Origin: Phyllobates terribilis | Lineage: Eukaryota | Assembly: GCF_046119375.1 (NCBI RefSeq) | Contig: NW_027362769.1 | Coordinates: 360,096,001-360,160,000 of the forward strand | Reading direction: 5' to 3' | Length of the DNA stretch: 64,000 nucleotides | Part shown: positions 14,686-40,532 of the stretch, one piece after another | Layout of the letters: each line of letters starts with the position of its first letter | How positions within the stretch are numbered: position 1 is the first letter of the stretch | The notes under the pieces: model-generated | What the model saw: the letters and a program-made list of their open reading frames with translations, nothing else | What the model was told of the DNA's origin: nothing | The model's database searches: none | Position numbers and translations under genes: made by a program

Positions 14686-14754
14686 GGCGCCTCCAGCTCC
14701 GGCCTCAGTGTTTTCCTATCAGGAGATATTTGTGTTCTAGTTCCGCAGCACACG

Positions 14755-15462
14755 ATGGCCGAGACCGCACCAGCCGCCGCTCCCCCTCCCGCAGAACCGG
14801 CCGCCAAATCCAAGAAACAGCCGAAGAAATCCGCCGCCGGGGGCGCCAAGAAAAGCAAGAAACCCTCCGGTCCCAGCGTCGCCGATCTGATCGTGAAAGC
14901 CGTGTCCGCCTCTAAGGAGCGCAGTGGGGTGTCTCTGGCCGCCCTGAAGAAGGCTCTGTCTGCCGGAGGATACGATGTAGAGAAGAACAATAGCCGCCTG
15001 AAGCTGGCCGTCAAGTCTCTGGTCACCAAGGGCGCCCTCCTCCAGGTGAAGGGCAGCGGCGCCTCCGGGTCCTTCAAGCTGAACAAGAAGCAGCAGGAGA
15101 CTAAGGACAAAGCGGCCAAGAAGAAGTCAGCAGCTGCGGCCAAGCCCAAGAAACCCGCTGCAGCCAAGAAAGCCGCCAAGTCTCCTAAGAAGCCCAAGAA
15201 GGCTCCGACCGCTGCCAAGAAGAGCCCGAAAAAGGCCAAGAAGCCCGCAGCAGCTGCCAAGAAGGCGGCCAAGAGCCCCAAGAAGCCAAAGGCCGCTCCG
15301 AAGCCCAAGAAGGTGACGAAGAGTCCGGCTAAGAAAGCGACCAAGCCCAAAGCTGCCAAGAGTCCTGCTAAGAAGGCGGCTAAAGCCAAGAAAGCCACCA
15401 CCTTGTCCGCTTCAGAGCTGTATGATCAGAGCCACCACCTTGTCCCCTTCCGAGCTGTATGA
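14755..15462 (+). CDS. H1: Linker histone H1 with truncated C-terminus fused to satellite (214 native aa plus 21 satellite-encoded aa); probably non-functional or misprocessed
   Basis: MAETAPAA start, globular domain [21 protein letters not shown]...[13 protein letters not shown] and KSPKK-rich tail. Native sequence stops at 15396 and continues [21 protein letters not shown]. No histone stem-loop follows. Confidence 0.93.
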
Positions 15463-15914
15463 TCAGAGCCACCACCTTGTCCCCTTCTGAGCTGTATGAT
15501 CAGAGCTACCACCTTGTCCCCTTCAGAGCTGTATGATCAGATCCACCACCTTGTCCCCTTCAGAGCTGTATGATCAGATCCACCACCTTGCCCCCTTCCG
15601 AGCTGTATGATCAGAGCTACCACCTTGTCCCCGGCAGAGCTGTATGATCAGTGCCACCACCTTGTCCCCGGCAGAGCTGTATGATCAGTGCCACCACCTT
15701 GTCCCCGGCAGAGCTGTATGATCAGAGCCACCTCCTTGTCCCCTGCAGAGCTGTATTATCAGTGCCATCATCTTGTCCCCTGCAGAGCTGTATGATCAAT
15801 GCCACCACCTTGTCCCCACCAGAGCTGTATAAGTGCCACCACCTTGTCCCCGGCAGAGCTGTATGATCAGAGCCACCACCTTGTCCCCTGCAGAGCTGTA
15901 TGATCAGTGCCACC
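15394..15914 (+). repeat. 37-bp HDE-derived satellite, H1-proximal block (about 14 units)
   Basis: Unit GCCACCACCTTGTCCCC(TT/TG/GG)CAGAGCTGTATGATCAG(A/T). Confidence 0.95.
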
Positions 15915-16820
15915 TAGAGATGAGCGTTGTTCTACTCGAACTGTTCGCCAATCTCAAATTCGAGCTGTTTTGGGCGGTGTTCGAGCCGGTCGGCGAACAC
16001 GAACAATTTGAGAAAAATTCGGCTGTTCGAGGTTATGTTCGATAACTGTTCGTGCACCAAAATCATAACTGGATTTTTTCTCAGTAATGATGAAAATTAA
16101 TGTTAATACGCAGTTTGAGTGTACAGCGGGGCAGGGGATGGATCTCTGCAGGAACAATGAAGATCTCCATTTTTTTTTCTCTTTCCCGCATTTGCAGTGG
16201 GGAGGTGCAATCTGTCAGCCTATCAGCAGCGCACACACGGAGCGAAGTGCTTTTTTTCACACAAGCAAGGGCATGTGTGATTGGCAGTGTATGTCACATG
16301 TCCTTGCCCTATAAGACCAAGCCATTTTCCCCGTCGCCACCATTTTCTCACTGCTGCAGCTGCGTGTTAGACGGCACCGCTGTTGCTGTGTGCGCTATAC
16401 CTTGTTAATTTCAAGCCAATTTTCGCACAAATATACAGATAGCTTGGGAGTAGGGAATAGTTGTGATTGCAGTCCTTTTAAGGACTAGGTTACAGCATTT
16501 CCTACGACTTTTATCAGGCAGGTCTGTGCTCTTAAATAGATAGATTGTGGGAGTAAAGACTAATTGTAATTGGAGTCCTTTTCAGGACTAGGTTACATCA
16601 GTTCCTATCAGTTTTTGCCAGGCAGGTCTGTGCCAGTGCTGTGCAAGTTTTTTTCACAGCATTTGGCTGAATCTAGCAAAGCTAATCCTTTTTGGCCTAT
16701 TGCAGAGTGTGTTAGTCAGTGGAGTAGCCTATCTGTGTTGCAAGATATACCACCTGTGTATAGAATACCAATTTTTTTACTGCACCTAGTGAAGTAAAAT
16801 CTTTTGGGCATAGCATCATT

Positions 16821-19800
16821 CTATTAGTCCATCTATACTGACCTCCATCAGGTTGCAAACTGAATATAATTTTTTTCTGCATCTAGCTCTGAAAAAATAT
16901 TTGGGCTTCTAGCGGTGTGTGGGACTTGGTCTATTAGTCCATCTATACTGACCTCCATCAGGTTGCAAATTAAAAATAATTTTTTTCTGCATCTAGCTCT
17001 GAAAAAATATTTGGGCTTCTAGCAGTGTGTGGGACTTGGTCTATTAGTCCATCTATACTGACCTCCATCAGGTTGCAAATTAAAAATAATTTTTTTCTGC
17101 ATCTAGCTCTGAAAAAATATTTGGGCTTCTAGCAGTGTGTGGGACTTGGTCTATTAGTCCATCTATACTGACCTCCATCAGGTTGCAAATTAAAAATATT
17201 TTTTTTCTTCATTTATCTCTGAAAAAATATTTGGGCTTCTAGCAGCGTGTGGGACTTGTTCTATTAGTCCATCTATACTGACCTCCATCAGGTTGCAAAT
17301 TAAAAATAATTTTTTTCTGCATGTAGCTCTGAAAAAATATTTGGGCTTCTAGCAGTGTGTGGGATTTGGTCTATTAGTCCAGCTATACTGACCTCCATCA
17401 GGTTGCAAATTAAAAATAATTTTTTTCTTCATTTATCTCTGAAAAAATATTTGGCCTTCTAGCAGTGTGTGGGACTTGGTCTATTAGTCCAGCTATACTG
17501 ACCTCCATCAGGTTGCAAATTAAAAATAATTTTTTTCTGCATCTAGCTCTGAAAAAATATTTGGGCTTCTAGCAGTGTGTGGGATTTGGTCTATTAGTAC
17601 ATCTATACTGACGTCCATCAGGTTGCAAATTGAATAAAAAAAATTTCTGCATCTAGCTCTGAAAAAATATTTGGGCTTCTAGCAGTGTGTGGGACTTGGT
17701 CTATTAGTCCATCTATACTGACCTCCATCAGGTTGCAAATTGAATAAAAAAAATTTCTGCATCTAGCTCTGAAAAAATATTTGGGCTTCTAGCGGTGTGT
17801 GGGACTTGGTCTATTAGTCCATCTATACTGACCTCCATCAGGTTGCAAATTAAAAATAATTTTTTTCTGCATCTAGCTCTAAAAAAATATTTGGGCTTCT
17901 AGCAGTGTGTGGGACTTGGTCTATTAGTCCATCTATACTGACCTCCATCAGGTTGCAAATTAAAAATAATTTTTTTCTGCATCTAGCTCTGAAAAAATAT
18001 TTGGGCTTCTAGCAGTGTGTGGGACTTGGTCTATTAGTCCATCTATACTGACCTCCATCAGGTTGCAAATTAAAAATATTTTTTTTCTGCATCTAGCTCT
18101 GAAAAAATATTTGGGCTTCTAGCAGTGTGTGGGACTTGGTCTATTAGTCCATCTATACTGACCTCCATCAGGTTGCAAATTAAAAATAATTTTTTTCTGC
18201 ATCTAGCTCTGAAAAAATATTTGGGCTTCTAGCAGTGTGTGGGACTTGGTCTATTAGTCCATCTATACTGACCTCCATCAGGTTGCAAATTAAAAATATT
18301 TTTTTTCTTCATTTATCTCTGAAAAAATATTTGGGCTTCTAGCAGCGTGTGGGACTTGTTCTATTAGTCCATCTATACTGACCTCCATCAGGTTGCAAAT
18401 TAAAAATAATTTTTTTCTGCATGTAGCTCTGAAAAAATATTTGGGCTTCTAGCAGTGTGTGGGACTTGGTCTATTAGTCCATCTATACTGACCTCCAGCA
18501 GGTTGCAAATTAAAAATAATTTTTTTCTGCATCTAGCTCTGAAAAAATATTTGGGCTTCTAGCAGTGTGTGGGACTTGGTCTATTAGTACATCTATACTG
18601 ACGTCCATCAGGTTGCAAATTGAATAAAAAAAATTTCTGCATCTAGCTCTGAAAAAATATTTGGGCTTCTAGCAGTGTGTGGGACTTGGTCTATTAGTCC
18701 ATCTATACTGACCTCCATCAGGTTGCAAATTGAATAAAAAAAATTTCTGCATCTAGCTCTGAAAAAATATTTGGGCTTCTAGCGGTGTGTGGGACTTGGT
18801 CTATTAGTCCATCTATACTGACCTCCATCAGGTTGCAAATTAAAAATAATTTTTTTCTGCATCTAGCTCTGAAAAAATATTTGGGCTTCTAGCAGTGTGT
18901 GGGACTTGGTCTATTAGTCCATCTATACTGACCTCCATCAGGTTGCAAATTAAAAATAATTTTTTTCTGCATCTAGCTCTGAAAAAATATTTGGGCTTCT
19001 AGCAGTGTGTGGGACTTGGTCTATTAGTCCATCTATACTGACCTCCATCAGGTTGCAAATTAAAAATAATTTTTTTCTGCATCTAGCTCTGAAAAAATAT
19101 TTGGGCTTCTAGCAGTGTGTGGGACTTGGTCTATTAGTCCATCTATACTGACCTCCATCAGGTTGCAAATTAAAAATAATTTTTTTCTGCATCTAGCTCT
19201 GAAAAAATATTTGGGCTTCTAGCAGTGTGTGGGACTTGGTCTATTAGTCCATCTATACTGACCTCCATCAGGTTGCAAATTAAAAATATTTTTTTTCTTC
19301 ATTTATCTCTGAAAAAATATTTGGGCTTCTAGCAGCGTGTGGGACTTGTTCTATTAGTCCATCTATACTGACCTCCATCAGGTTGCAAATTAAAAATAAT
19401 TTTTTTCTGCATGTAGCTCTGAAAAAATATTTGGGCTTCTAGCAGTGTGTGGGACTTGGTCTATTAGTCCAGCTATACTGACCTCCATCAGGTTGCAAAT
19501 TAAAAATAATTTTTTTCTGCATCTAGCTCTGAAAAAATATTTGGGCTTCTAGCAGTGTGTGGGATTTGGTCTATTAGTACATCTATACTGACGTCCATCA
19601 GGTTGCAAATTGAATAAAAAAAATTTCTGCATCTAGCTCTGAAAAAATATTTGGGCTTCTAGCAGTGTGTGGGACTTGGTCTATTAGTCCATCTATACTG
19701 ACCTCCATCAGGTTGCAAATTGAATAAAAAAAATTTCTGCATCTAGCTCTGAAAAAATATTTGGGCTTCTAGCGGTGTGTGGGACTTGGTCTATTAGTCC

Positions 19801-20187
19801 ATCTATACTGACCTCCATCAGGTTGCAAATTAAAAATAATTTTTTTCTGCATCTAGCTCTGAAAAAATATTTGGGCTTCTAGCAGTGTGTGGGACTTGGT
19901 CTATTAGTCCATCTATACTGACCTCCATCAGGTTGCAAATTAAAAATAATTTTTTTCTGCATCTAGCTCTGAAAAAATATTTGGGCTTCTAGCAGTGTGT
20001 GGGACTTGGTCTATTAGTCCATCTATACTGACCTCCATCAGGTTGCAAATTAAAAATAATTTTTTTCTTCATTTATCTCTGAAAAAATATTTGGGCTTCT
20101 AGCAGCGTGTGGGACTTGTTCTATTAGTCCATCTATACTGACCTCCATCAGGTTGCAAATTAAAAATAATTTTTTTCTGCATCTAGC
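16821..20187 (+). repeat. 110-bp tandem array inside the hAT (30.6 units, 990-bp higher-order repeat)
   Basis: CTATTAGTCC recurs in exact 110-bp register from 16821 to 20121. Variant ACGTCCATCA at 17611, 18601 and 19591. Confidence 0.97.
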
Positions 20188-20301
20188 CCAGCCAATAGTT
20201 TTGGCCTAATACCACAGTTTGGCCACTCAGCTCTGCTCGGTTACCATCCATTGTTTTTTTGTGCAAACAACTCCAGAGTTGTGAATTAGTTAACCACCAA
20301 A

Positions 20302-23300
20302 ATGAGTGGAAAAAGGCCTGCTGCTGGTGGAAAGGGGAATAGGCGTGTTGGGAAGGGGAAAAAAGGTTGTGTCCGTGGGGTAGGTGCAGAAGAAAGACCA
20401 TCTTCCAGCCAAACTAAAATGTCTACTTCTTTTAGCGGACAATGTGATAAGATCCCTTTCTTACGGCCACGCCAATCGCTACAAATTCCAGATGAGGCAC
20501 AAAAACAGCAGGTGCTTCAACGGATATCAAGTGCTCCTTTAAGTGCGCTCTCCTCCACATCAACTTCAACATCACAAATACTCCAGTTCTCAAAGGTGTC
20601 ACCCAAATCGCACTTGCTTCCTCACAGCTCCCAAATCTCCAGCTGCCCGTCTGAGTATGAGGTAGAACAGATGGTTGAGTCTGCAGAGCTGTTTACTCAT
20701 ACTATAGCCTGGGAATCAGAGGTCGACTCCAGCGCTTCTGTGAATCCAGACGAGGAAATGATCTGCACTGATGCCCTGAATCTTTATGAGTCGGATCCAG
20801 GACCAGACGCAGAAGGTTCTGACCATAATGTAGACCCTCATTCCCAAACTGTAACTCCTGTTGGTGGAGACAATGAGGAAGACGATGATAAGACTCAAAT
20901 ACCTGATTGGAGCGACAACTTTAGTTTTTTGTCAGGGCAGGAACAGGTTGGCTCTGAGGACGACGGGTGTGATAACGCACAGGGTGATGATGATGAGGTC
21001 GGAGATCCCACTTACTGTCAACCCACAGTCAGCCAAGAGATGAGGTCAGCAGAGGAGGTGGAGGAAGATGCTAGTGACGACGAGGTCAGGTTGCGCCTTC
21101 CTGGACAGAGACGTAGTACTGGAAGCACGTCAACAATTGCATCCTCAAACACAACTCTGCCTCTCACCACAAGTCGTGGTGGCTCTTCAGGTCGCATGGG
21201 TGCTAAGCCTTGCATAGCCTGGGCATTTTTTCAGATCGAAAAAGATGACCCAACTCGTGTTATCTGTAACATTTGTCAGCAAAAGCTAAGTAGAGGCCAA
21301 AAAATACATAGTTTGAGTACTTCATGCATGAACCGGCACATGGACATGAAGCATAAGTTGCAGTGGGAAGCTCAGTGTGCTACAATGCGGCCTAGCCGGC
21401 CGGGCCAATCACCGTCTGCCATATCTTGTGCATCCGCGGCCTCTTCATCCTCTGTGACTGGGGGGACAGCAGTCACACCTGTTTTGGGGCGCAGACCTGC
21501 CACCTCTTTACCCGCAACAGCCAGCGTGATTGGCAGGTCATCATTTTCTTTGGAGGTGGTAACACCAGCTGGTGTTGAGCGCTGTCCGACATCGATAGCA
21601 CCACCTTTGGATCAAGGCAACCTAACATGTCCGCCTGCATCTTCCTCACAGACCGGCAGTTTGCCGGGGACACCCTTATCAACCCCGTCTAAGCACAATA
21701 GCCAGCCCTCAGTCCCTCAGATGTGGACAAGTAAAAGACCATTTCCTCCTAGCCATGAGAAAGCTAAGAGGTTGAATTTCACCATCTGCAAGCTCTTGGC
21801 TACAGAAATGCTGCCTTTCCGCCTGGTGGACACAGAGGATTTTCGAGACCTTATGTCCGTCGCAGTGCCCCAGTACCAGATGCCCAGTCGGCACTACTTC
21901 TCAAAGAAAGGTGTGCCTGCGCTCCACCAGCATGTCGCACACAACATCACCGCTTCTTTGAGAAACTCTGTGTGTGACAGGGTGCATTTCACCACAGACA
22001 CTTGGACGAGTAGGCATGGACAGGGGCGTTACATGTCGCTGACTGGGCACTGGGTAACTATGGTGACAGCAGGACAAGGGGCTGCTGTCCAAGTCTTGCC
22101 GTCCCCACGAGTTGTGCGTCAATCCTCTTTATGTCAAAGTTCCTCCACTGCTTCTGCCTCCTCAACCTCCTCTCGGTCTTCCACCTGCACCCAAAGCCTG
22201 TCTGGTCATGCCACAAGCTTTCTAACTGCGCAGAAGGGATCCTGCACACCTCCTTACTATGCTGGCAGTAGGGCTCAACGTCATCAGGCGGTTTTTACAT
22301 TGAAATGTCTGGGAAATGTGAGTCACACAGCTGAGGAGTTGTGGTCAGCTCTGGAGAACCAATTTCATGAATGGTTGTCTCCACTGGACCTGAAACCAGG
22401 GAAGGCCGTGTGCGACAATGCTGCAAACCTGGGTGCGGCCCTTCGCCGGGGCAATGTCACACACGTGCCTTGTATGGCTCACGTGTTGAACCTGGTTGTC
22501 CAGCAATTTTTAGCCCACTATCCCAGACTAGATGGCCTTCTGCAGAGGGCACGGTCGCTGTGTGCTCACTTCCGCCGTTCGCATCCCGCAGCTCAGCGAC
22601 TTACATCTCTACAGAAGTCGTTGGGCCTGCCACTTCACCGGCTAAAATGCGATGTGCCTACCCGGTGGAATTCAACTCTGCACATGTTGCAGCGACTGTG
22701 GCAGCACCGACAAGCCCTGGTGCAATACGTTCTGACGTATAGCCTGGGCCAACGAGATTCAGAGGTGGGGCAAATCACGCTGGAGGAGTGGTCTCAGATC
22801 AGGAACCTATGCACCCTTCTGCACAGTTTTGAAATGGCGACGAAGATGTTTAGTGCTGACGATGCCATTATCAGCATGACTATTCCGGTGATTTACATGC
22901 TGGAGCACATGTTAAACAGAATTCGGAGTCAGGTGGTGGCACAAGAGGAGGTGGAGGAAGTAGAGGAGGAGGAGTTGTATGCGGAAGGGCTAACATCTGC
23001 AAGGTCCAGACGGTCGGCAGCACCAAGGCGGCAGGCATGTGAGAGTGGGGGAGATGGTTTTACCAGGGCGCATGGTAGCAGCCAAACTAGTGAGGAAGGT
23101 GCAGGAGCCCAAGAAGAAGTGGAGGACGAACTGATGGAAGACTCATCAGATGAGGGAGACCTTGATCACATTTCTGTTGTGCGAGGTTGGGGGGAGAGGA
23201 CAGAGGAAGGAAGCATGATTGTTACCTCGCCACCAACACAACAGGGACTTGGTGCTCCTGGATGCGCAACACACATGAGTGCCTTCTTGCTGCACTACCT

Positions 23301-23967
23301 GCAACATGACCCTCGAATTGTGAGAATTAGAAATAATCCTGACTACTGGGTTGCCACACTGTTAGATCCCCGGTACAAAAGTAAATTTGCAGAAATTATT
23401 CCTGCCATAGAAAGGGATGCACGCATGCAGGAGTATCAGCAGAGACTGTTGCAGAATCTTACATGTGCTTTTCCACAAAATACCAGTGGTGCACGTAGTG
23501 AATCTCACAGTTCCAACTTGCCAACCGTGGGACCGTCAAGTGTTCAGCACTCAAACCGTAACAGAACCACAGTATCTGCTGGTAACATCAATTTTGCGGA
23601 ATCATTTCACCACTTTTTTAGCCCACAGGAGACAAGAAGTCTGACACATAGTCAACGCCTAGAGACGATGGTACAGGAGTATCTCCAAGTAAACATTGAA
23701 GCCGCGACTGTGTCACTGGACCCTTGCTCTTTTTGGGCTTCCAATCTGGATAAATGGCCGGAGCTAGCCACTTACGCCTTGGAGATCTTGTCATGCCCCG
23801 CAGCCAGCGTTCTGTCTGAACGTGTGTTCAGCGCTGCTGGTGGTGTGCTGACAGATAAGCGCACGCGGCTCTCCACTGATAATGTAGACAGACTCACGTT
23901 CATAAAGATGAACAAATCATGGATCCGAAACGACTTTTCTACCCCTGTGTCATCCTGGGGAGAGTAA
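20302..23967 (+). CDS. hAT-family transposase, 1221 aa, uninterrupted ORF
   Basis: BED finger (AWAFF...CNIC...MNRHMDMKH), FTTDTWTS, VCDNAAN, PCMAH (CxxH), DVPTRWNST, and SERVFSAAG in the C-terminal dimerisation region. Confidence 0.95.
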   Translation: MSGKRPAAGGKGNRRVGKGKKGCVRGVGAEERPSSSQTKMSTSFSGQCDKIPFLRPRQSLQIPDEAQKQQVLQRISSAPLSALSSTSTSTSQILQFSKVSPKSHLLPHSSQISSCPSEYEVEQMVESAELFTHTIAWESEVDSSASVNPDEEMICTDALNLYESDPGPDAEGSDHNVDPHSQTVTPVGGDNEEDDDKTQIPDWSDNFSFLSGQEQVGSEDDGCDNAQGDDDEVGDPTYCQPTVSQEMRSAEEVEEDASDDEVRLRLPGQRRSTGSTSTIASSNTTLPLTTSRGGSSGRMGAKPCIAWAFFQIEKDDPTRVICNICQQKLSRGQKIHSLSTSCMNRHMDMKHKLQWEAQCATMRPSRPGQSPSAISCASAASSSSVTGGTAVTPVLGRRPATSLPATASVIGRSSFSLEVVTPAGVERCPTSIAPPLDQGNLTCPPASSSQTGSLPGTPLSTPSKHNSQPSVPQMWTSKRPFPPSHEKAKRLNFTICKLLATEMLPFRLVDTEDFRDLMSVAVPQYQMPSRHYFSKKGVPALHQHVAHNITASLRNSVCDRVHFTTDTWTSRHGQGRYMSLTGHWVTMVTAGQGAAVQVLPSPRVVRQSSLCQSSSTASASSTSSRSSTCTQSLSGHATSFLTAQKGSCTPPYYAGSRAQRHQAVFTLKCLGNVSHTAEELWSALENQFHEWLSPLDLKPGKAVCDNAANLGAALRRGNVTHVPCMAHVLNLVVQQFLAHYPRLDGLLQRARSLCAHFRRSHPAAQRLTSLQKSLGLPLHRLKCDVPTRWNSTLHMLQRLWQHRQALVQYVLTYSLGQRDSEVGQITLEEWSQIRNLCTLLHSFEMATKMFSADDAIISMTIPVIYMLEHMLNRIRSQVVAQEEVEEVEEEELYAEGLTSARSRRSAAPRRQACESGGDGFTRAHGSSQTSEEGAGAQEEVEDELMEDSSDEGDLDHISVVRGWGERTEEGSMIVTSPPTQQGLGAPGCATHMSAFLLHYLQHDPRIVRIRNNPDYWVATLLDPRYKSKFAEIIPAIERDARMQEYQQRLLQNLTCAFPQNTSGARSESHSSNLPTVGPSSVQHSNRNRTTVSAGNINFAESFHHFFSPQETRSLTHSQRLETMVQEYLQVNIEAATVSLDPCSFWASNLDKWPELATYALEILSCPAASVLSERVFSAAGGVLTDKRTRLSTDNVDRLTFIKMNKSWIRNDFSTPVSSWGE

Positions 23968-24179
23968 AAGCTTGATGATTGGTTAAAATCACCCTACCAA
24001 CCGTTTTAAGCTTTCAAATTACTAATCATGTTTATCTGTATCTTGACTGGAAAATAATTTGGGCTTTGTAGCAGTGTGCAGCACTGATCCTATTAGGCCA
24101 TCTATAATAAGCTTCACCAGATTTAAAATTAAAAATAATTTTTAGCTGCATCTAGCCCGGAAAATAATTTTGGGGCTCC

Positions 24180-25737
24180 GAGATGCGCAAGACACATAAG
24201 TGCCTTCTTGCTGCACTACCTGCAGCATGACCCTCATATTGTCAGAATTCGAAGTAATCATGACTACTGGGTTGCCACACTCTTAGATCCCCCAAACTTT
24301 TCGATCAACCTTTTCATTTTAATAAAGACCAAAAAAATGGTCATTTTTGAAATTATAAGCATTAGCAGGTTGTTAGAAACTGAAATCAAACAGTTTTCAA
24401 CTCAAAACTTTATTCTAGGTGATGTTACATTTTCACATAGGACCCCTTGTTCGAAAGGAGCTTCTGAACTCTCTCGTCCATTGAATTTGTCAGGTTTTGG
24501 ATGGTTTCTGCTTCAATTGTTTTGCATGAGGACAGAATACCCTCCCAGAGCTGTTGCTTAGATGTGAACTGCCTCCCGCCATCATAGACACTCCTTTTAA
24601 TGATGCTCCAAAGGTTCTGAATGGGGTAGAGGTCAGGGGAGCATGGGGGTCACACCATAAGTTTGTCCCCTTTTATGCCCATATCAGCCAGAGATGCAGA
24701 TGTTTTATGTGCAGCATGAGATGGTGCATTATCATGCAGAAAAATGATCTTGCTGTGAAATACACGGTTCTTCTTCTTGAACCATGGCAGGAAGTGCTGT
24801 TTGAGAAAATCCACATACATTATGGAGTTCATCTTTAGCGCCTTCAGGGATCCTAAAGGGGCCGACAATCTCTCTCCCCATGATTCCAGCCCAAAACATT
24901 ACTCCACCTCCTCCTTGTTGGCGCTGTAGCAGTGTTTGCGTGGGGTGTCCATCAACCAGCCATCCTCCACTCCATTCATCTGGACCATCGAGCGCTGCAC
25001 GGCACTCATCCGTGAACAAAACAGTTTTGAAATCAGTCTTCATGTTATGTTTGGCCCACTGGAGCCGTTTCTGCTTGTGTGAAGTGGATAGAGGAGGTCG
25101 ACAGGATGGCATATGCACAGCTGCAAACCTCTGAAGGACCCTGCATCTTGTTGTTCGGGGGACGTTGGAGGCACAAGCAGCTTCAAAAACTTGTCTGCTG
25201 TTATGACAAGGCTTTTTTGCCGCTGCTGTTTCAACCTGACGTAATTGCCTGTAGGAAAGAGTCCTCAATTTGCCCTTATCAGCACGCACACGTGTGTACT
25301 GTGAATCAGCTACATACTTCTTGATTGCCAAGACACTTCATCCTGATCATCGCACAATGTTGATTGTAGTCATGCCTTGACCTAAACACTCCACAATTTG
25401 TTGCTTCTCAGCAGCCGACACATCCTTTTTCTTTCCCATTTTGGCAGAAAATGTAGGCTGCTTAATAATGTGAGAGAGCCTTCTTAAGTAGTCTTGCCTT
25501 TCATTGGACACACCTGCCAAACTAATTAGCACAGGTGTCTGCAATTGCTTACAGTGATATAAAGAGCCCTGACACACATCACCATCAATGAGTTTAACTG
25601 ACAAACAAACAAATTCTTCCCTTATCACTCCTAAACACTTTTTGCATAATAATTTGGAACGCGGTGTACATGTGCTTTTCCACAAAACACCAGTGGTTCA
25701 CGTAGTGAATCTTACAGTTCTAACTTGCCAACCGTGG
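24180..25737 (+). pseudogene. Second hAT transposase fragment (about 24180-24292 and 25667-25737) split by a Tc1
   Basis: LHYLQHDPHIVRIRSNHDYWVATLLDP matches 23290-23370. TACATGTGCTTTTCCACAAAA matches 23460 onward. About 90 bp of hAT and one Tc1 end are missing at the left junction. Confidence 0.85.
24293..25666 (-). mobile_element. Decayed Tc1/mariner element (transposase remnant 24425-25439)
   Basis: VLFTDECR, FLHDNAPSH and PCSPDLYPIQNLW (catalytic E replaced by Q), with stops and frameshifts. One terminus, followed by TA at 25667-25668. Confidence 0.9.
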
Positions 25738-27785: not shown

Positions 27786-28291
27786 GAGGGACAATTTAAA
27801 TTAAAAAGCTTAGAGCTGCCTCCACCACAGGGGGGCTCTCTCGACCCACCAGCGGACAGGCACCAGTATTGGGAGAGGGGGGCTGGCCGTCAGGGTTCAC
27901 CGCGGCTCTGGCACAAACCTGGCGACACGGAGGTGGCACGGGCAGGAGCGGACTGGGCGTCTCGGCTTCTCACTTTTTGGATTTTAGAAGGGCATGACAT
28001 GCCTATATCTGTGTCTCCCCCTCCTTTTACTCCTCCACCTCTTTTCTTTTCGCATGACTATATGTACTTGTCACTTTTCCATGTGTTAGTTGTGTCTTCT
28101 GAGCAGTTTGTCAGCTTTTGGACACCTTTGAAGGTGTTTTCTATGTGTTTCCATGTGTTTTTGTTTGCCTGCCATTGGTTTTAACGGTGTTCGAAGGTGT
28201 TCGACGAACAGTTCGACGAACAGTTCGGCGAACACACGGGTGTCCGACGAACCGAACCGAACTTGAACACTACGGGGGTGGCTCAACACTA

Positions 28292-31200
28292 GTGCCACCA
28301 CCTTGTACCCTGCAGAGCTGTATAATCAGTGCCATCATCTTGTCCCCGGCAGAGCTGTATAAGTGCCACCACCTTGTCCCCGGCAGAGCTGTATGATCAG
28401 AGCCACCTCCTTGTCCCCTGCAGAGCTGTATGATCAGTGCCACCACCTTGTCCCCGGCAGAGCTGTATGATCAGTGCCACCACCTTGTCCCCGCCAGAGC
28501 TGTATTATCAGTGCCACCACCTTGTCCTCGGCAGAGCTGTATGATCAGAGCCACCTCCTTGTCCCCTGCAGAGCTGTATGATCAGAGCCACCACCTTGTC
28601 CCCTGCAGAGCTGCATTATCAGTGCCACCACTTTGTCCCCTGCAGAGCTGTATGATCAATGCCACCACCTTGTCCCCACCAGAGCTGTATAAGTGCCACC
28701 ACCTTGTCCCCGGCAGAGCTGTATGATCAGAACCACCACCTTGTCCCCTGCAGAGCTGTATGATCAGAGCCACCACCTTGTCCCCTGCAGAGCTGTATAA
28801 TCAGTGCTATCATCTTGTCCCCGGCAGAGCTGTATGATCAGTGCCACCACCTTGTCCCCGCCAGAGCTGTATAAGTGCCACCACCTTGTCCCCGGCAGAG
28901 CTGTATGATCAGAGCCACCTCCTTGTCCCCTGCAGAGCTGTATGATCAGTGCCACCACCTTGTCCCCGCCAGAGCTGTATAAGTGCCACCACCTTGTCCC
29001 CGGCAGAGCTGTATGATCAGAGCCACCTCCTTGTCCCCTGCAGAGCTGTATGATCAGTGCCACCACCTTGTCCCCGCCAGAGCTGTAATAGTGCTACCAC
29101 CTTGTCCCCGGCAAATCTGTATGATCAGAGCCACCTTCTTGTCCCCTGCAGAGCTGTATGATCAGTGCCACCACCTTGTCCCCTGCAGAGCTGTATAATC
29201 AGTGCCATCATCTTGTCCCCGGCAGAGCTGCATTATCAGTGCCACCACTTTGTCCCCTGCAGAGCTGTATGATCAGTGCCACCTCCTTGTCCCCTGCAGA
29301 GCTGTATGATCAGAGCCACCACCTTGTCCCCTACAGAGCTGTATGATCAGTGCCAACACCTTGTCCCCTGCAGAGCTGTATAATCAGTGCCATCATCTTG
29401 TCCCCGGCAGAGTTTTATGATCAGTGCCACCACCTTGTCCCCGGCAGAGCTGTATGATCAGAGCCACCTCCTTGTCCCCTGCAGAGCTGTATGATCAGAG
29501 CCACCACCTTGCCCCCTTCCGAGCTGTATGATCAGAGCCACCACCTTGTCCCCTGCAGAGCTGTATGATCAGTGCTACCACCATGTCCCCGGCAGAGCTG
29601 TATGATCAGAGCCATCACCTTGTCCCCGGCAGAGCTGTATTATGAGTGACACCACTTTGTCCCCTGCAGAGCTGTATGATCAGTGCCACCACCTTGTCCC
29701 CGCCAGAGCTGTATAAGTGCCACCACCTTGTCCCCGGCAGAGCTGTATGATCAGAGCCACCTACTTGTCCACTGCAGAGCTGTATGATCAGTGCCACCAC
29801 CTTGTCCCCTGCAGAGCTGTATAATCAGTGCCATCATCTTGTCCCCGGCAGAGCTGCATTATCAGTGCCACCACTTTGTCCCCTGCAGAGCTGTATGATC
29901 AGTGCCACCACCTTGTCCCCACCAGAGCTGTATAAGTGCCACCACCTTGTCCCCAGCAGAGCTGTGTGATCAGAGTCACCACCTTGTCCCCTGCAGAGCT
30001 GTATGATCAGTGCCACCACCTTGTCCCCTGCAGAGCTGTATAATCAGTGCCATCATCTTCTCCCCGGCAGAGCTGTATGATCAGTGCCACCACCTTGTCC
30101 CCGCCAGAGCTGTATAAGTGCCACCACCTTGTCCCCGGCAGAGCTGTATGATCAGAGCCACCTCCTTGTCCCCTGCAGAGCTGTATGATCAGTGCCACCA
30201 CCTTGTCCCCGCCAGAGCTGTATAAGTGCCACCACCTTGTCCGCGGCAGAGCTGTTTGATCAGAGCCACCTCCTTGTCCCCTGCAGAGCTGTATGATCAG
30301 TGCCACCACCTTGTCCCCGCCAGAGCTGTATAAGTGCTACCACCTTGTCCCCGGCAGAGCTGTATGATCAGAGCCACCTCCTTGTCCCCTGCAGAACTGT
30401 ATGATCAGTGCCACCACCTTGTCCCCTGCAGAGCTGTATAATCAGTGCCATCATTTTGTCCCCGGCAGAGCTGCATTATCAGTGTCACCAATTTGTCCCC
30501 TGCAGAGCTGTATGATCAGTGCCACCTCCTTGTCCCCTGCAGAGCTCTATGATCAGAACCACCACCTTGTCCCCTACAGAGCTGTATGATCAGTGCCACC
30601 ACCTTGTCCCCTGCAGAGCTGTATAATCAGTGCCATCATCTTGTCCCCGGCAGAGCTGTATGATCAGTGCCACCACCTTGTCCCCGGCAGAGCTGTATGA
30701 TCAGAGCCACCTCCTTGTCCCCTGCAGAGCTGTATGATCAGTGCCACCACCTTGTCCCCTGCAGAGCTGTATGATCAGTGCCACCACCTTGTCCCCACCA
30801 GAGCTGTATAAGTGCCAACACCTTGTCCCCGGCAGAGCTGTATGATCAGAGCCACCACCTTGTCCCCTGCAGAGCTGTATGATCAGTGCTACCACCATGT
30901 CCCCGGCAGAGCGGTATGATCAGAGCCACCACCTTGTCCCCGGCAGAGCTGTATTATGAGTGCCACCACTTTGTCCCCTGCAGAGCTGTATGATCAGTGC
31001 CACCACCTTGTCCCCGCCAGAGCTGTATAAGTGCCACCACCTTGTCCCCGGCAGAGCTGTATGATCAGAGCCACCTCCTTGTCCCCTGCAGAGCTGTATG
31101 ATCAGTGCCAACACCTTGTCCCCTGCAGAGCTGTATAATCAGTGCCATCATCTTGTCCCCGGCAGAGCTGCATTATCAGTGCCACCACTTTGTCCCCTGC

Positions 31201-34200
31201 AGAGCTTTATGACCAGTGCCACCACCTTGTCCCCACCAGAGCTGTATAAGTGCCACCACCTTGTCCCCGGCAGAGCTGTATGATCAGAGCCACCACCTTG
31301 TCCCCTGCAGAGCTGTATGATCAGTGCCACCACCTTGTCCCCTGCAGAGCTGTATAATCAGTGCCATCATCTTGTCCCCGGCAGAGCTGTATGATCAGTG
31401 CCACCATCTTGTCCCCGCCAGAGCTGTATAAGTGCCACCACCTTGTCCCCGGCAGAGCTGTATGATCAGAGCCACCTCCTTGTCCCCTGCAGAGCTGTAT
31501 GATCAGTGCCACCACCTTGTCCCCGCCAGAGCTGTATAAGTGCCACCACATTGTCCCCGGCAGAGCTGTATGATCAGAGCCACCTCCTTGTCCCCTGCAG
31601 AGCTGTATGATCAGTGCCACCACCTTGTCCCCGCCAGAGCTGTATAAGTGCTACCACCTTGTCCCCGGCAGAGGTGTATGATCAGAGCCACCTCCTTGTC
31701 CCCAGCAGAGCTGTATGATCAGTGCCACCACCTTGTCCCCTGCAGAGCTGTATAATATGTGCCATCATCTTGTCCCCGGCAGAGCTGCATTATCAGTGCC
31801 ACCACTTTGTCCCCTGCAGAGCTGTATGATCAGTGCTACCTCCTTGTCCCCTGCAGAGCTGTATGATCAGAGCCACCTCCTTGTCCACTGCAGAGCTGTA
31901 TGATCAGAGCCACCACCTTGTCCCCTGCAGAGCTGTATGATCAGTGCCACCACCTTGTCCCCTGCAGAGCTATATAATCAGTGCCATCATCTTGTCCCCG
32001 GCAGAGCTGTATGATCAGTGCCACCACCTTGTCCCCGCCAGAGCTGTCTAAGTGCCACCACCTTGTCCCCGGCAGAGCTGTATGATCAGAGCCACCTCCT
32101 TGTCCCCTGCAGAGCTGTATGATCAGTGCCACCACCTTGTCCCCTGCAGAGCTGTATAATCAGTGCCATGATCTTGTCCCCGGCAGAGCTGCATTATCAG
32201 TGCCACCACTTTGTCCCCTGCAGAGCTGTATGATCAGTGCCACCACCTTGTCCCCACCAGAGCTGTATAAGTGCCACCACCTTGTCCCCGGCAGAGCTGT
32301 ATGATCAGAGCCACCACCTTGTCCCCTGCAGAGCTGTATGATCAGTGCCACCACCTTGTCCCCTGCAGAGCTGTATAATCAGTGCTATCATCTTGTCCCC
32401 GGCAGAGCTGTATGATCAGTGCCATCACCTTGTCCCCGCCAGAGCTGTATAAGTGCCACCACCTTGTCCCCGGCAGAGCTGTATGATCAAAGCCACCTCC
32501 TTGTCCCCTGCAGAGCTGTATGATCAGTGCCACCACCTTGTCCCCGCCAGAGCTGTATAAGTGCCACCACCTTGTCCCCGGCAGAGCTGTATGATCAGAG
32601 CCACCTCCTTGTCCCCTGCAGAGCTGTATGATCAGTGCCACCACCTTGTCCCCGCCAGAGCTGTATAAGTGCTACCACCTTGTCCCCGGCAGAGCTGTAT
32701 GATCATAGTCACCTCCTTGTCCCCTGCAGAACTGTATGATCAGTGCCACCACCTTGTCCCCTGCAGAGCTGTATAATCAGTGCCATCATTTTGTCCCCGG
32801 CAGAGCTGCATTATCAGTGCCACCAATTTGTCCCCTGCAGAGCTGTATGATCAGTGCTACCACCATGTCCCCGGCAGAGCTGTATGATCAGAGCCACCAC
32901 CTTGTCCCCGGCAGAGCTGTATTATGAGTGCCACCACTTTGTCCCCTGCAGAGCTGTATGATCAGTGCCACCACCTTGTCCCCGCCAGAGCTGTATAAGT
33001 GCCACCACCTTGTCCCCGGCAGAGCTGTATGATCAGAGCCACCTCCTTGTCCCCTGCAGAGCTGTATGATCAGTGCCACCACCTTGTCCCCTGCAGAGCT
33101 GTATAATCAGTGCCATCATCTTGTCCCCGGCAGAGCTGCATTATCAGTGCCACCACTTTGTCCCCTGCAGAGCTGTATGATCAGTGCCACCACCTTGTCC
33201 CCGGCAGAGCTGTATGATCAGAGCCACCACCTTGTCCCCTGCAGAGCTGTATGATCAGTGCCACCACCTTGTCCCCTGCAGAGCTGTATAATCAGTGCCA
33301 TCAACTTGTCCCCGGCAGAGCTGTATGATCAGTGCCACCACCTTGTCCCCGCCAGAGCTGTATAAGTGCCACCACCTTGTCCCTGGCAGAGCTGTATGAT
33401 CAGAGCCACCTCCTTGTCCCCTGCAGAGCTGTATGATCAGTGCCACCACCTTGTCCCCGCCAGAGCTGTATAAGTGCCACCACCTTGTCCCCGGCAGAGC
33501 TGTATGATCAGAGCCACCTCCTTGTCCCCTGCAGAGCTGTATGATCAGTGCCACCAGCTTGTCCCCGCCAGAGCTGTATAAGTGCTACCACCTTGTCCCC
33601 GGCAGAGGTGTATGATCAGAGCCACCTCCTTGTCCCCTGCAGAGCTGTATGATCAGTGCCACCACCTTGTCCCCTGCAGAGCTGTATAATATGTGCCATC
33701 ATCTTGTCCCCGGCAGAGCTGCATTATCAGTGCCACCACTTTGTCCCCTGCAGAGCTGTATGATCAGTGCTACCTCATTGTCCCCTGCAGAGCTGTATGA
33801 TCAGAGCCACCACCTTGTCCCCTACAGAGCTGTATGATCAGTGCCACCACCTTGTCCCCTGCAGAGCTGTATAATCAGTGCCATCATCTTGTCCCCGGCA
33901 GAGCTGTATGATCAGTGCCACCACCTTGTCCCCGGCAGAGCTGTATGATCAGAGCCACCTCCTTGTCCACTGCAGAGCTGTATGATCAGAGCCACCACCT
34001 TGTCCCCTGCAGAGCTGTATGATCAGTGCCACCACCTTGTCCCCTGCAGAGCTATATAATCAGTGCCATCATCTTGTCCCCGGCACAGCTGTATGATCAG
34101 TGCCACCACCTTGTCCCCGCCAGAGCTGTCTAAGTGCCACCACCTTCTCCCCGGCAGAGCTGTATGATCAGAGCCACCTCCTTGTCCCCTGCAGAGCTGT

Positions 34201-37200
34201 ATGATCAGTGCCACCACCTTGTCCCCTGCAGAGCTGTATAATCAGTGCCATCATCTTGTCCCCGGCAGAGCTGCATTATCAGTGCCACCACTTTGTCCCC
34301 TGCAGAGCTGTATGATCAGTGCCACCACCTTGTCCCCGCCAGAGCTGTATAAGTGCCACCACCTTGTCCCCGGCAGAGCTGTATGATCAGAGCCACCTCC
34401 TTGTCCCCTGCAGAGCTGTATGATCAGTGCCACCACCTTGTCCCCGCCAGAGCTGTAAAAGTGCTACCACCTTGTCCCCGGCAAAGCTGTATGATCAGAG
34501 CCACCTTCTTGTCCCCTGCAGAGCTGTATGATCAGTGCCACCATCTTGTCCCCTGCAGAGCTGTATAATCAGTGCCATCATCTTGTCCCCGGCAGAGCTG
34601 CATTATCAGTGCCACCACTTTGTCCCCTGCAGAGCTGTATGATCAGTGCCACCTCCTTGTCCCCTGCAGAGCTGTATGATCAGAGCCACCACCTTCTCCC
34701 CTACAGAGCTGTATGATCAGTGCCACCACCTTGTCCCCGGCAGAGCTGTATGATCAGAGCCACCTCCTTGCCCCCTGCAGAGCTGTATGATCAGAGCCAC
34801 CACCTTGCCCCCTTACGAGCTGTATGATCAGAGCCACCACCTTGTCCCCTGCAGAGCTGTATGATCAGTGCTACCACCATGTCCCCGGCAGAGCTGTATG
34901 ATCAGAGCCATCACCTTGTCCCCGGCAGAGCTGTATTATGAGTGACACCACTTTGTCTCCTGCAGAGCTGTATGATCAGTGCCACCACCTTGTCCCCTGC
35001 AGAGCTGTATAAGTGCCACCACCTTGTCCCCGGCAGAGCTGTATGATCAGAGCCACCTCCTTGTCCCCTGCAGAGCTGTATGATCAGTGCCACCACCTTG
35101 TCCCCTGCAGAGCTGTATAATCAGTGCCATCATCTTGTCCCCGGCAGAGCTGCATTATCAGTGCCACCACTTTGTCCCCTGCAAAGCTGTATGATCAGTG
35201 CCACCACCTTGTCCCCACCCGAGCTGTATAAGTGCCACCACCTTGTCCCCGGCAGAGCTGTATGATCAGAGTCACCACCTTGTCCCCGGCAGAGCTGTAT
35301 GATCAGTCCCACCACCTTGTCCCCTGCAGAGCTGTATAATCAGTGCCATCATTTTGTCCCTGGCAGAGCTGCATTATCAGTGCCACCAATTTGTCCCCTG
35401 CAGAGCTGTATGATCAGTGCTACCACCATGTCCCCGGCATAGCTGTATGATCAGAGCCACCACCTTGTCCCCGGCAGAGCTGTATTATGAGTGCCACCAC
35501 TTTGTCCCCTGCAGAGCTGTATGATCAGTGCCACCACCTTGTCCCCGCCAGAGCTGTTTAAGTGCCACCACCTTGTCCCCGGCAGAGCTGTATGATCAGA
35601 GCCACCTCCTTGTCCCCTGCAGAGCTGTATGATCAGTGCCACCACCTTGTCCCCTGCAGAGCTGTATAATCAGTGCCATCATCTTGTCCCCGGCAGAGCT
35701 GCATTATCAGTGCCACCACTTTGTCCCCTGCAGAGCTGTATGATCAGTGCCACCACCTTGTCCCCACCAGAGCTGTATAAGTGCCACCACCTTGTCCCCG
35801 GCAGAGCTGTATGATCAGAGCCACCACCTTGTCCCCTGCAGAGTTGTATAATCAGTGCCACCACCTTGTCCCCTGCAGAGCTGTATAATCAGTGCCATCA
35901 TCTTGTCCCCGGCAGAGCTGTATGATCAGTGCCACCACCTTGTCCCCGCCAGAGCTGTATAAGTGCCACCACCTTGTCCCCGGCACAGCTGTATGATCAG
36001 AGCCACCTCCTTGTCCCCTGCAGAGCTGTATGATCAGTGCCACCACCTTGTCCCCGCCAGAGCTGTATAAGTGCCACCACCTTGTCCCCGGCAGAGCTGT
36101 ATGATCAGAGCCACCTCCTTGTCCCCTGCCAAGCTGTATGATCAGTGCCACCACCTTGTCCCCGCCAGAGCTGTATAAGTGCTACCACCTTGTCCCCTGC
36201 AGAGGTGTATGATCAGAGCCACCTCCTTGTCCCCTGCAGAGCTGTATGATCAGTGCCACCACCTTGTCCCCTGCAGAGCTGTATAATATGTGCCATCATC
36301 TTGTCCCCGGCAGAGCTGCATTATCAGTGCCACCACTTTGTCCCCTGCAGAGCTGTATGATCAGTGCTACCTCCTTGTCCCCTGCAGAGCTGTATGATCA
36401 GAGCCACCACCTTGTCCCCTACAGAGCTGTATGATCAGTGCCACCACCTTGTCCACTGCAGAGCTGTATAATCAGTGCCATCATCTTGTCCCCGGCAGAG
36501 CTGTATGATCAGTGCCACCACCTTGTCCCCGGCAGAGCTGTATGATCAGAGCCACCTCCTTGTCCACTGCAGAGCTGTATGATCAGAGCCACCACCTTGT
36601 CCCCTGCAGAGCTGTATGATCAGTGCCACCACCTTGTCCCCTGCAGAGCTATATAATCAGTGCCATCATCTTGTCCCCGGCAGAGCTGTATGATCAGTGC
36701 CACCACCTTGTCCCCGCCAGAGCTGTCTAAGTGCCACCACCTTGTCCCCGGCAGAGCTGTATGATCAGAGCCACCTCCTTGTCCCCTGCAGAGCTGTATG
36801 ATCAGTGCCACCACCTTGTCCCCTGCAGAGCTGTATAATCAGTGCCATCATCTTGTCCCCGGCAGAGCTGCATTATCAGTGCCACCACTTTGTCCCCTGC
36901 AGAGCTGTATGATCAGTGCCACCACCTTGTCCCCACCAGAGCTGTATAAGTGCCAACACCTTGTCCCCGGCAGAGCTGTATGATCAGAGCCACCACCTTG
37001 TCCCCTGCAGAGCTGTATGATCAGTGCCCCACCTTGTCCCCTGCAGAGCTGTATGATCAGTGCCACCACCTTGTCCCCTGCAGAGCTGTATAATCAGTGC
37101 TATCATCTTGTCCCCGGCAGAGCTGTATGATCAGTGCCACCACCTTGTCCCCGCCAGAGCTGTATAAGTGCCACCACCTTGTCCCCGGCAGAGCTGTATG

Positions 37201-39479
37201 ATCAGAGCCACCTCCTTGTCCCCTGCAGAGCTGTATGATCAGTGCCACCACCTTGTCCCCGCCATAGCTGTATAAGTGCCACCACCTTGTCCCCGGCAGA
37301 GCTGTATGATCAGAGCCACCTCCTTGTCCCCTGCAGAGCTGTATGATCAATGCCACCACCTTGTCCCCGCCAGAGCTGTAAAAGTGCTACCACCTTGTCC
37401 CCGGCAAAGCTGTATGATCAGAGCCACCTTCTTGTCCCCTGCAGAGCTGTATGATCAGTGCCACCACCTTGTCCCCTGCAGAGCTGTATAATCAGTGCCA
37501 TCATCTTGTCCCCGGCAGAGCTGCATTATCAGTGCCACCACTTTGTCCCCTGCAGAGCTGTATGATCAGTGCCACCTCCTTGTCCCCTGCAGAGCTGTAT
37601 GATCAGAGCCACCACCTTGTCCCCTACAGAGCTGTATGATCAGTGCCACCACCTTGTCCCCTGCAGAGCTGTATAATCAGTGCCATCATCTTGTCCCCGG
37701 CAGAGCTGTATGATCAGTGCCACCACCTTGTCCCCGGCAGAGCTGTATGATCAGAGCCACCTCCTTGTCCCCTGCAGAGCTGTATGATCAGAGCCACCAC
37801 CTTGCCCCCTTCCGAGCTGTATGATAAGAGCCACCACCTTGTCCCCTGCAGAGCTGTATGATCAGTGCTACCACCATGTCCCCGGCAGAGCTGTATGATC
37901 AGAGCCATCACCTCGTCCCCGGCAGAGCTGTATTATGAGTGACACCACTTTGTCTCCTGCAGAGCTGTATGATCAGTGCCACCACCTTGTCCCCGCCAGA
38001 GCTGTATAAGTGCCACCACCTTGTCCCCGGCAGAGCTGTATGATCAGAGCCACCTCCTTGTCCCCTGCAGAGCTGTATGATCAGTGCCACCACCTTGTCC
38101 CCTGCAGAGCTGTATAATCAGTGCCATCATCTTGTCCCCGGCAGAGCTGCATTATCAGTGCCACCACTTTGTCCCCTGCAGAGCTGTATGATCAGTGCCA
38201 CCACCTTGTCCCCACCAGAGCTGTATAAGTGCCACCACCTTGTCCCCGGCAGAGGTGTATGATCAGAGTCACCACCTTGTCCCCTGCAGAGCTGTATGAT
38301 CAGTGCCACCACCTTGTCCCCTGCAGAGCTGTATAATCAGTGCCATCATCTTGTCCCCGGCAGAGCTGTATGATCAGTGCCACCACCTTGTCCCCGCCAG
38401 AGCTGTATAAGTGCCACCACCTTGTCCGCGGCAGAGCTGTTTGATCAGAGCCACCTCCTTGTCCCCTGCAGAGCTGTATGATCAGTGCCACCACATTGTC
38501 CCCGCCAGAGCTGTATTAGTGCTACCACCTTGTCCCCGGCAGAGCTGTATGATCAGAGCCACCTCCTTGTCCCCTGCAGAACTGTATGATCAGTGCCACC
38601 ACCATGTCCCCTGCAGAGCTGTATAATCAGTGCCATCATTTTGTCCCCGGCAGAGCTGCATTATCAGTGCCACCAATTTGTCCCCTGCAGAGCTGTATGA
38701 TCAGTGCCACCTCCTTGTCCCCTGCAGAGCTGTATGATCAGAGCCACCACCTTGTCCCCTACAGAGCTGTATGATCAGTGCCACCACCTTGTCCCCTGCA
38801 GAGCTGTATAATCAGTGCCATCATCTTGTCCCCGGCAGAGCTGTATGATCAGTGCCACCACCTTGTCCCCGGCAGAGCTGTATGATCAGAGCCACCTCCT
38901 TGTCACCTGCAGAGCTGTATGATCAGTGCCACCACCTTGTCCCCTGCAGAGCTGTATGATCAGTGCCACCACCTTGTCCCCACCAGAGCTGTATAAGTGC
39001 CAACACCTTGTCCCCGGCAGAGCTGTATGATCAGAGCCACCACCTTGTCCCCTGCAGAGCTGTATGATCAGTGCTACCACCATGTCCCCGGCAGAGCTGT
39101 ATGATCAGAGCCACCACCTTGTCCCCGGCAGAGCTGTATTATGAGTGCCACCACTTTGTCCCCTGCAGAGCTGTATGATCAGTGCCACCACCTTGTCCCC
39201 GCCAGAGCTGTATAAGTGCCACCACCTTGACCCCGGCAGAGCTGTATGATCAGAGCCACCTCCTTGTCCCCTGCAGATCTGTATGATCAGTGCCACCACC
39301 TTGTCCCCTGCAGAGCTGTATAATCAGTGCCATCATCTTGTCCCTGGCAGAGCTGCATTATCAGTGCCACCACTTTGTCCCCTGCAGAGCTGTATGATCA
39401 GTGCCACCACCTTGTCCCCTGCAGATCTGTATGATCAGTGCCACCACCTTGACCCCGGCAGAGCTGTATGATCAGTGCC
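28292..39479 (+). repeat. 37-bp (and 34-bp variant) HDE-derived satellite, main block, about 300 units with higher-order duplications
   Basis: Continues the 15394-15914 array in register after the TSD. Ends ...AGAGCTGTATGATCAGTGCC|CGTATATG, where unique sequence resumes. Confidence 0.97.

Positions 39480-39954: not shown

Positions 39955-40532
<578 letters not shown>

Follow-up and report, generated by a model that had tools for sequence, protein, structure and literature searches.

On natural histone processing substrates, the U7 small nuclear ribonucleoprotein (snRNP) is anchored by SLBP bound to the hairpin, and only strong duplexes work without SLBP. Processing is severely inhibited when uninterrupted U7 pairing is cut from about 15 bp to 9 bp (PMC7026596). 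In the newt Notophthalmus, an amphibian, histone clusters are located among satellites that are read through on lampbrush loops (Diaz et al., 1981; Gall et al., 1981; both as cited in PMC5615363; Epstein et al., 1986, PMC2114352). The locus described here is a 64,000-bp stretch of the genome of the poison frog Phyllobates terribilis (assembly GCF_046119375.1, contig NW_027362769.1, positions 360,096,001 to 360,160,000; the whole stretch is referred to as the window), in which a satellite with a 37-bp unit begins within a histone H1 gene. This array is proposed, with a probability of roughly 70%, to be a neutral satellite that arose from the 3' processing signal behind a histone H1 gene in a dendrobatid, Ranitomeya-like frog. 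We infer its origin by slippage, the order of the events that shaped it and its lack of a function from the features set out below.

Structure of the Array

Analysis with Tandem Repeats Finder placed the 37-bp array in two blocks, at 15393–15914 (14.2 copies) and 28291–39479 (306.2 copies, also reported at a period of 219), with matches between copies of 87% at period 37 and 89% at period 219. The core AGAGCTGT, with a tolerance of two mismatches, served as the anchor for individual units, and all 320 head-to-tail units were captured in this way with no gap in register. The spacing between neighboring units is 37 bp in 270 cases and 34 bp in 47, with single cases of 36 and 38 bp. Fourteen units form the proximal block (15394–15914, plus strand, delimited by the repeat finder, core anchoring and direct reading) and 306 the distal block (28292–39479, plus strand), in which higher-order repetition is irregular (period 219 and longer) and which ends in TCAGTGCC. 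The array as a whole begins within H1 and ends 642 bp before H3, with all units on the plus strand, and its terminus, at which TCAGTGCC is directly followed by CGTATATG, lies at 39479/39480 with unique sequence beyond.

The blocks are separated by a hAT transposon (15915–28291, plus strand), which was recognized from its target duplication and the list of open reading frames (ORFs) and has nested elements inside. Exact 8-bp copies of the target-site duplication GTGCCACC flank it at 15907–15914 and 28292–28299, and the two blocks are therefore one interrupted array. When the transposon and one copy of the duplication are removed, a continuous array of 11,701 bp is obtained. A previous reading of this DNA, made from the sequence only, had described a satellite of these coordinates with the same unit, about 320 copies and a size of 11.7 kb, and the repeat finder and core anchoring bear this out.

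The consensus of the unit is (T/A)GCC-ACCAC-CTTGTCCCC(T/G)GC-AGAGCTGTA-TGATCAG. This agrees with the consensus of the sequence-only reading overall but not at unit position 1, where T (67% of units) outnumbers A (33%), the commoner form being TCAGTGCC and not TCAGAGCC; the mutated stem half AGTGCC is accordingly found in two thirds of the units. ACCAC stands directly after (A/T)GCC, and unit positions 5–9 match the consensus in 80–99% of units. The first seven units beside H1 constitute an edge subtype with TTC before the core of the histone downstream element (HDE), where bulk units have TGC or GGC. Within the bulk of the array, certain strings of variants (for example D-A-B and C-F-E) are found repeatedly, and about every sixth unit is a 34-bp deletion variant. 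Ungapped autocorrelation resolved no clean higher-order period in the array, as the phase is shifted by the 34-bp units. In its length, its short head-to-tail unit and its signs of concerted evolution and higher-order pattern, the array has the properties of a satellite.

Every unit also holds a good 3' splice-site-like string (CTTGTCCCCTGCAG|A) and a 5' splice-site-like string (GTATGA), which are probably incidental and would matter if the repeat were transcribed. An exact-pattern scan of metagenome contigs for the 37-bp unit gave no match, and a protein search with a plus-strand repeat-encoded ORF of 98 amino acids likewise gave none, a result that is uninformative on the spread of the satellite.

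The Unit as a Histone 3' Processing Signal

The layout of the unit is that of a histone 3' end from the middle of the hairpin onwards, with the 3' half of the stem-loop, ACCAC, a 12-nt spacer and AGAGCTGTA. Four hairpins in the window served for comparison. Those of H3 (40564–40604, plus strand, Rfam Histone3 at 35.9 bits) and H4 (42954–42994, plus strand, 37.5 bits) are each followed by a downstream element, which in H4 is AGAGGCT, 17 nt after the stem. The H2A signal lies on the minus strand (47761–47801), with its stem-loop at 47801–47786 and the element AGAGCCGG at 47768–47761. The H2B stem-loop (48976–48991, plus strand) is followed by ACCAC and then by an array of its own, described below, so that the feature as a whole extends to 49537. 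Read across the unit borders, TCAG(A/T)GCC plus ACCAC corresponds to the loop end, 3' stem half and tail of the H3 and H4 hairpins, and TCAGAGCC plus ACCA(C) is the 3' stem half and tail of both. The distance from the end of the stem to AGAG is 17 nt in the unit and equally in H2B (AGAGCTGT), H2A (AGAGCCGG) and H4 (AGAGGCT). The match to the stem half and tail of H3 and H4, with the element spaced as in H2B, H2A and H4, which had been noted in the sequence-only reading, is confirmed, with 17 nt from stem to AGAG in each case of the latter three and in the unit.

The similarity was quantified by gap-free comparison of the unit with the histone 3' ends in all rotations and offsets, with 500 shuffled units as the control. 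Against the H2B 3' end, 28 of the 37 positions are identical (z 8.6), rising to 29 of 37 for edge-type units (z 9.1), while the maximum in the 500 shuffles was 22. Edge-type units are nearer to the H2B flank than bulk units at the TTC position only. Identity with the H2A 3' end amounts to 26–27 of 37 positions (z 6.0–7.5).

The 5' half of the stem is missing. Neither GGCTCT nor GGCTCT-N4-AGAGCC occurs in the array (0 times each), and the units consequently form no hairpin and offer no SLBP site. An Rfam search of the distal block (28291–39600) gave no match at E<=1, which leaves no cryptic stem-loops or other known RNAs there, and in the proximal block there was no Histone3 match at the gathering score; the absence of stem-loops had also been claimed from the sequence and stands. 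Of the 16-nt SLBP-binding hairpin (6-bp stem, 4-nt loop) that belongs to a complete signal, the unit retains the 3' half only, and it possesses both the ACCA/ACCCA cleavage context and the spaced, purine-rich U7-complementary element. The comparisons support the view that the 37-bp unit was copied from a histone 3' processing signal, with stem 3' half, cleavage context, spacer and HDE.

Relationship of the Array to the H1 Gene

The native part of the H1 coding sequence comprises 213 codons at 14755–15393 (plus strand), as determined from the ORF list and alignment with relatives, and over these 213 amino acids the protein is 95% identical to H1 of Ranitomeya variabilis, with the next best matches being other dendrobatid frogs. 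Those relatives end in AKAKKPAAKK. The H1 of the window passes directly from AKAKK (last codon 15391–15393) into GCC-ACC-ACC of the repeat, and its frame (ORF 14626–15462) continues as a repeat-encoded tail of 22 codons and a stop at 15394–15462, the stop codon being at 15460–15462. The gene lacks its five terminal codons (PAAKK) and its own stop as well as the 3' untranslated region (UTR) and the 5' stem half, and the junction of H1 and array shares a short GCC/AGCC microhomology with the unit. The promoter region is retained, with two CCAAT boxes and a TATA-like element. The protein reads SVADLI where all six of the compared frog H1 proteins that cover the site read SVSELI (two substitutions), and it has an additional Q in KKQQETK. 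These differences suggest relaxed constraint on an H1 gene that is without its 3' end, and the gene looks like a damaged paralogue.

A view of the undamaged arrangement is provided by an H1 gene model of R. imitator (P0009), which runs through the stop codon, with ...AKAKKPAAKK followed by KGSYKSHH. The latter is the expected translation of AAAGGCTCT-TATA-AGAGCCACCAC, which is a histone hairpin. The model continues with LLPAELYDQC, of which AELYDQC is the exact product of GCAGAGCTGTATGATCAGTGC of the unit (GCAGAG to CAGTGC), and then with a C-rich stretch and RRAV, corresponding to a second ...GCAGAGCTGTATGA. The repeat in the window contains PAELYDQC in translation. Back-translation of this model strongly indicates that the intact H1 of a related frog has a stem-loop, then this unit and then at least one degenerate second unit. 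An origin of the unit from the 3' end of another histone gene was rejected, as the R. imitator model carries the unit sequence after the stem-loop of H1 itself. The proposal that the array derives from the 3' signal of H1, first made from the sequence, gains from three sides, namely the joining of the array to H1, the order of stem-loop and unit in the R. imitator model and the 28–29 of 37 identities with H2B, and derivation of the unit from H1's own processing signal is supported.

It could be argued that the repeat is unrelated to histone signals and resembles them by chance, or that the junction of array and H1 has been misassembled. Short motifs such as AGAGCTGT do arise by chance, and long satellites are hard to assemble. 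Against this, about 20 specified bases stand at the correct spacing (z about 9 compared with shuffles), the array lies exactly where the 3' end of H1 is expected, and the R. imitator model has the same sequence after its stem-loop. Structured patterns of variants and a clean hAT insertion with its duplication are rare in collapsed or chimeric assemblies. Chance resemblance was rejected on the grounds that none of the 500 shuffles reached the 28–29 of 37 identities with the H2B 3' end, and this explanation in its two forms is regarded as scarcely credible.

Origin and Expansion of the Array

The following history is proposed. At the ancestral H1 3' end, a stem-loop with TCAGAGCC as its last bases would have been followed by ACCAC, a spacer of 12 nt, AGAGCTGTA as the element complementary to U7, TGA and finally TCAGTGCC. 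Replication slippage or unequal exchange between these two 8-nt near-repeats, located 37 nt apart, would have duplicated the segment, and further unequal crossing-over may then have expanded and partially homogenized it to 320 units with a loose higher-order pattern. A later deletion across the GCC/AGCC microhomology would have removed everything from the last five H1 codons through the stop and 3' UTR to the 5' half of the stem-loop, leaving a gene without the SLBP-binding hairpin and with a frame extending 22 codons into the repeat. The hAT insertion in unit 14 would have occurred later still.

An exchange between TCAGAGCC and TCAGTGCC predicts this very unit, with the T form always at the end of the array and both forms, A and T, in its interior, and all of this is seen. 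The slippage model of the sequence-only reading, which had taken these direct repeats as the source of two unit variants, fits the T-form terminus and the A/T mixture. The recurring strings of variants and the 34-bp variant at about every sixth unit are as expected from unequal crossing-over. From the Tandem Repeats Finder table it is estimated that about half of the window consists of tandem repeats, which indicates that the region is generally prone to slippage. At a locus of R. variabilis, only 882 bp lie between the H1 stop and the start of the next H3. A few units at most would fit into this gap, which suggests that the size of the array is not fixed or constrained.

A second array of similar nature is found at H2B, where 14 copies of a 39-bp unit containing the H2B downstream element (48997–49537, 95% matches between copies) start right after the ACCAC of the intact hairpin. 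Like the H1 array, it is oriented with its gene, begins at the histone cleavage site and multiplies a U7-complementary element. It differs in having an intact stem-loop in front, only 14 copies, another unit length and phase, no stem half within the unit and a far higher homogeneity. The different length and phase and the higher homogeneity point to a separate, younger and independent amplification.

Since in both arrays the repeats start from a histone cleavage site and include the downstream element, one could see in them a fail-safe arrangement for processing or termination, in which extra downstream elements let U7 snRNP catch read-through RNA from H1 copies that bear a stem-loop. CPSF73 could then cut or degrade the RNA and free the polymerase before the next gene, and the array in the window would be an overgrown, broken copy of such an arrangement. 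H3 is co-oriented and lies 642 bp past the array, so that read-through would interfere with it, and strong U7 duplexes are known to be processed without SLBP, with CPSF73 degrading the downstream product in the 5'-3' direction (PMC7026596). However, the H1 copy in the window lacks a stem-loop altogether, and neither array shows preferential conservation of the core, the AGAGCTGT core being mutated in 3 of the 14 H2B units. Moreover, the H1 3' ends in two contigs from more distant animals (Logan run assemblies) have an ordinary stem-loop and a single downstream element with no repeat. A fail-safe role is rated as unlikely, and neutral amplification of the processing signal is preferred.

U7 Complementarity and Selection on the Core

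Duplex energies were computed with the 5' region of mouse/human U7 (PMC7026596), a mammalian sequence and not the frog's own; in the 64-kb window, Rfam detected no U7 snRNA gene. The unit has 9 bp of perfect complementarity to U7, with a duplex energy of −14.0 kcal/mol, compared with −18.8 for the element of H2B, −11.6 for H3, −11.3 for H2A, −8.6 for H4 and about −7 for shuffles. By this prediction, each unit is a U7 site of natural strength.

On this complementarity the sequence-only reading had built the proposal that the repeat acts as a U7 snRNP decoy or as a scaffold of the histone locus body. RNA read through from H1 or from the transposon, most plausibly on oocyte lampbrush chromosomes, would carry tens to hundreds of sites and would either titrate U7 snRNP away or gather it at the histone locus. 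Such a role is rated as unlikely here, even though several observations favor it and count against an array of purely neutral character. The predicted duplex of the unit is stronger than those of the window's own H3, H2A and H4 elements, and the 9-bp match is intact in 81% of units (255 of 316). Plus-strand repeat RNA is less structured than all of 200 shuffles (z +3.3), and the predicted sites would therefore be accessible. The core is without high-frequency variants except T29C, where the ACCACC part has several. It should also be considered that concerted evolution weakens tests of conservation within an array, and a missing signal is no proof of neutrality.

The setting is likewise compatible with a decoy. 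No poly(A) hexamer is present in the 37-bp array, which thus has neither a poly(A) signal nor a stem-loop to stop or process a transcript, and upstream of it the promoter elements and reading frame of H1 are intact. U7 is concentrated in the Cajal bodies of Xenopus oocyte nuclei (PMC2173734), and in the newt, read-through on lampbrush loops yields satellite transcripts (PMC5615363, PMC2114352).

The distribution of variants speaks against it. Conservation was assessed by comparing the nine core positions with the other 28, rare variants being those present in three copies or fewer; as all 320 units had been captured, the test is free of ascertainment bias. The core contains 27 rare variants at 9 sites (3.0 per site) and the remainder 47 at 28 sites (1.68 per site), with a one-sided Mann-Whitney p of 0.86 for fewer in the core, and for lower minor-allele counts in the core the corresponding p was 0.30. 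A perfect core 8-mer is found in 262 of 316 units, compared with 283 of 316 for the spacer 8-mer TTGTCCCC. Excess conservation of AGAGCTGT(A), which had been named in the sequence-only reading as a check on function, is consequently not borne out. There is no sign of selection on the U7-binding motif, and the array looks like ordinary drifting satellite DNA. A sponge RNA would have a motif under purifying selection relative to its linker, and no such difference is seen; it would also have many sites on one transcript, where here the sites are present in the DNA, in an array that is now split by a transposon with poly(A) signals.

The position of the units adds to the case against a decoy, as 306 of the 320 are cut off from the H1 promoter by the 12.4-kb hAT transposon, which holds about 30 AATAAA/ATTAAA hexamers. 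Tolerance of this insertion was itself counted towards neutrality. In addition, elements of natural strength need SLBP on a stem-loop to hold U7 (PMC7026596), a structure which none of the units has, and the purine core of the unit is only AGAG and not AAAGAG. The decoy or scaffold function is accordingly unsupported, with the core not preferentially conserved and nearly all units behind the transposon, and the same is true of the proposed U7 function in general. In a broader version, histone loci of poison frogs would present hundreds to thousands of tandem U7-complementary sites that form, when transcribed by read-through (on oocyte lampbrush chromosomes, for instance), a multivalent platform concentrating or buffering U7 snRNP at the histone locus. 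This is very unlikely; if it were true, it would amount to a natural scaffold or sponge RNA for the histone-processing snRNP. A neutral satellite derived from the H1 processing signal remains the favored explanation.

Neighboring Genes and Repeats

The gene order of the cluster is H1 (plus), H3 (plus), H4 (plus), a LINE-like reverse-transcriptase ORF (minus), H2A (minus) and H2B (plus). Between the end of the array and the H3 start codon lies a unique flank (39480–40121, plus strand, by direct reading), in which the H3 promoter and a relic monomer of a 21-bp satellite (~39520–39545) were recognized. The 21-bp satellite (TATATAGAGCAGTGTGTACAG family) brackets the cluster at 13244–13937 and 50882–63996, in opposite orientations. 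Upstream of H1 a 30-bp tandem repeat is also present (12450–13136, 23 copies), with long proline/glycine-rich ORFs on both strands, which are probably meaningless.

The hAT transposon has a transposase ORF of 1221 amino acids (20302–23967), and inside it a 110-bp tandem repeat (16820–20187) consists of 30 copies with 95% matches, each containing ATTAAA or AATAAA. Its right-hand 3.26 kb (25035–28291) is 98% identical to positions 1–3410 of the window, and both copies hold a Tc1-like ORF and a 120-bp fragment of 18S rRNA (2810–2930 and 27692–27811; Rfam 63–72 bits). The terminal sequence of the transposon, ...CAACACTA, recurs at window position 3410 beside an unrelated flank. With both copies ending in the same way next to different flanks, it is indicated that the hAT element, carrying its cargo, transposed as a unit. 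Fragments of hAT transposase ORFs were also found on both strands upstream of the cluster (4476–8115), as inverted partial copies.

Comparison with Known Systems

A full-text literature search, in which subscription journals were mostly outside the coverage, found no satellite derived from a histone downstream element or from an H1 stem-loop, and within this partial coverage a satellite seeded by a histone processing signal seems, tentatively, not to have been described so far. The locus offers an unusually clear instance of the birth of a satellite, with the seed, the bounding near-repeats and the mature 11.7-kb array in one window and the younger H2B array alongside. It also amounts to a natural construct, with hundreds of downstream elements without stem-loops placed beside an H1 gene that has lost its hairpin, and might serve to find out if such RNA is bound by U7 snRNP in vivo and what the fate of an unprocessable H1 transcript is. 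Should the array prove to be transcribed and bound, it would bear on the concentration of U7 at amphibian histone loci; if not, it is a well-documented neutral satellite.

The unit can still be recognized as part of the canonical metazoan histone 3' signal: the 3' stem half is followed by the ACCAC tail, and after a normal-length spacer comes a 9-nt element complementary to U7, at the same offset as in H2B, H2A and H4 of the window. It departs from that signal in the lack of a 5' stem half, in its repetition 320 times head to tail, in the A-to-T change in the stem half of most units and in a purine core of AGAG in place of AAAGAG.

Satellites and minisatellites seeded by slippage resemble the array in their head-to-tail units, which are here of two lengths (37 and 34 bp), in recurring strings of variants, in edge units unlike those of the bulk and in the tolerance of a transposon insertion. 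The difference is that the seed of this array is a defined functional RNA-processing element, the boundaries of which, including the near-repeats TCAGAGCC and TCAGTGCC, can still be read.

The satellites of newt histone clusters have, to our knowledge, units of a few hundred bp, and we know of no reported derivation of these from a processing signal. What is known from the newt and from Xenopus makes a U7 decoy a reasonable idea, but is no evidence for one at this locus. As in the newt, a long tandem array is located directly downstream of a histone gene and co-oriented with it, and the cluster of the window is additionally flanked on both sides by the 21-bp satellite; the 37-bp array thus shares with the newt satellites its position next to histone genes and its orientation along them. 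It is set apart from those of the newt by a unit of 37 bp that is visibly a copy of the signal.

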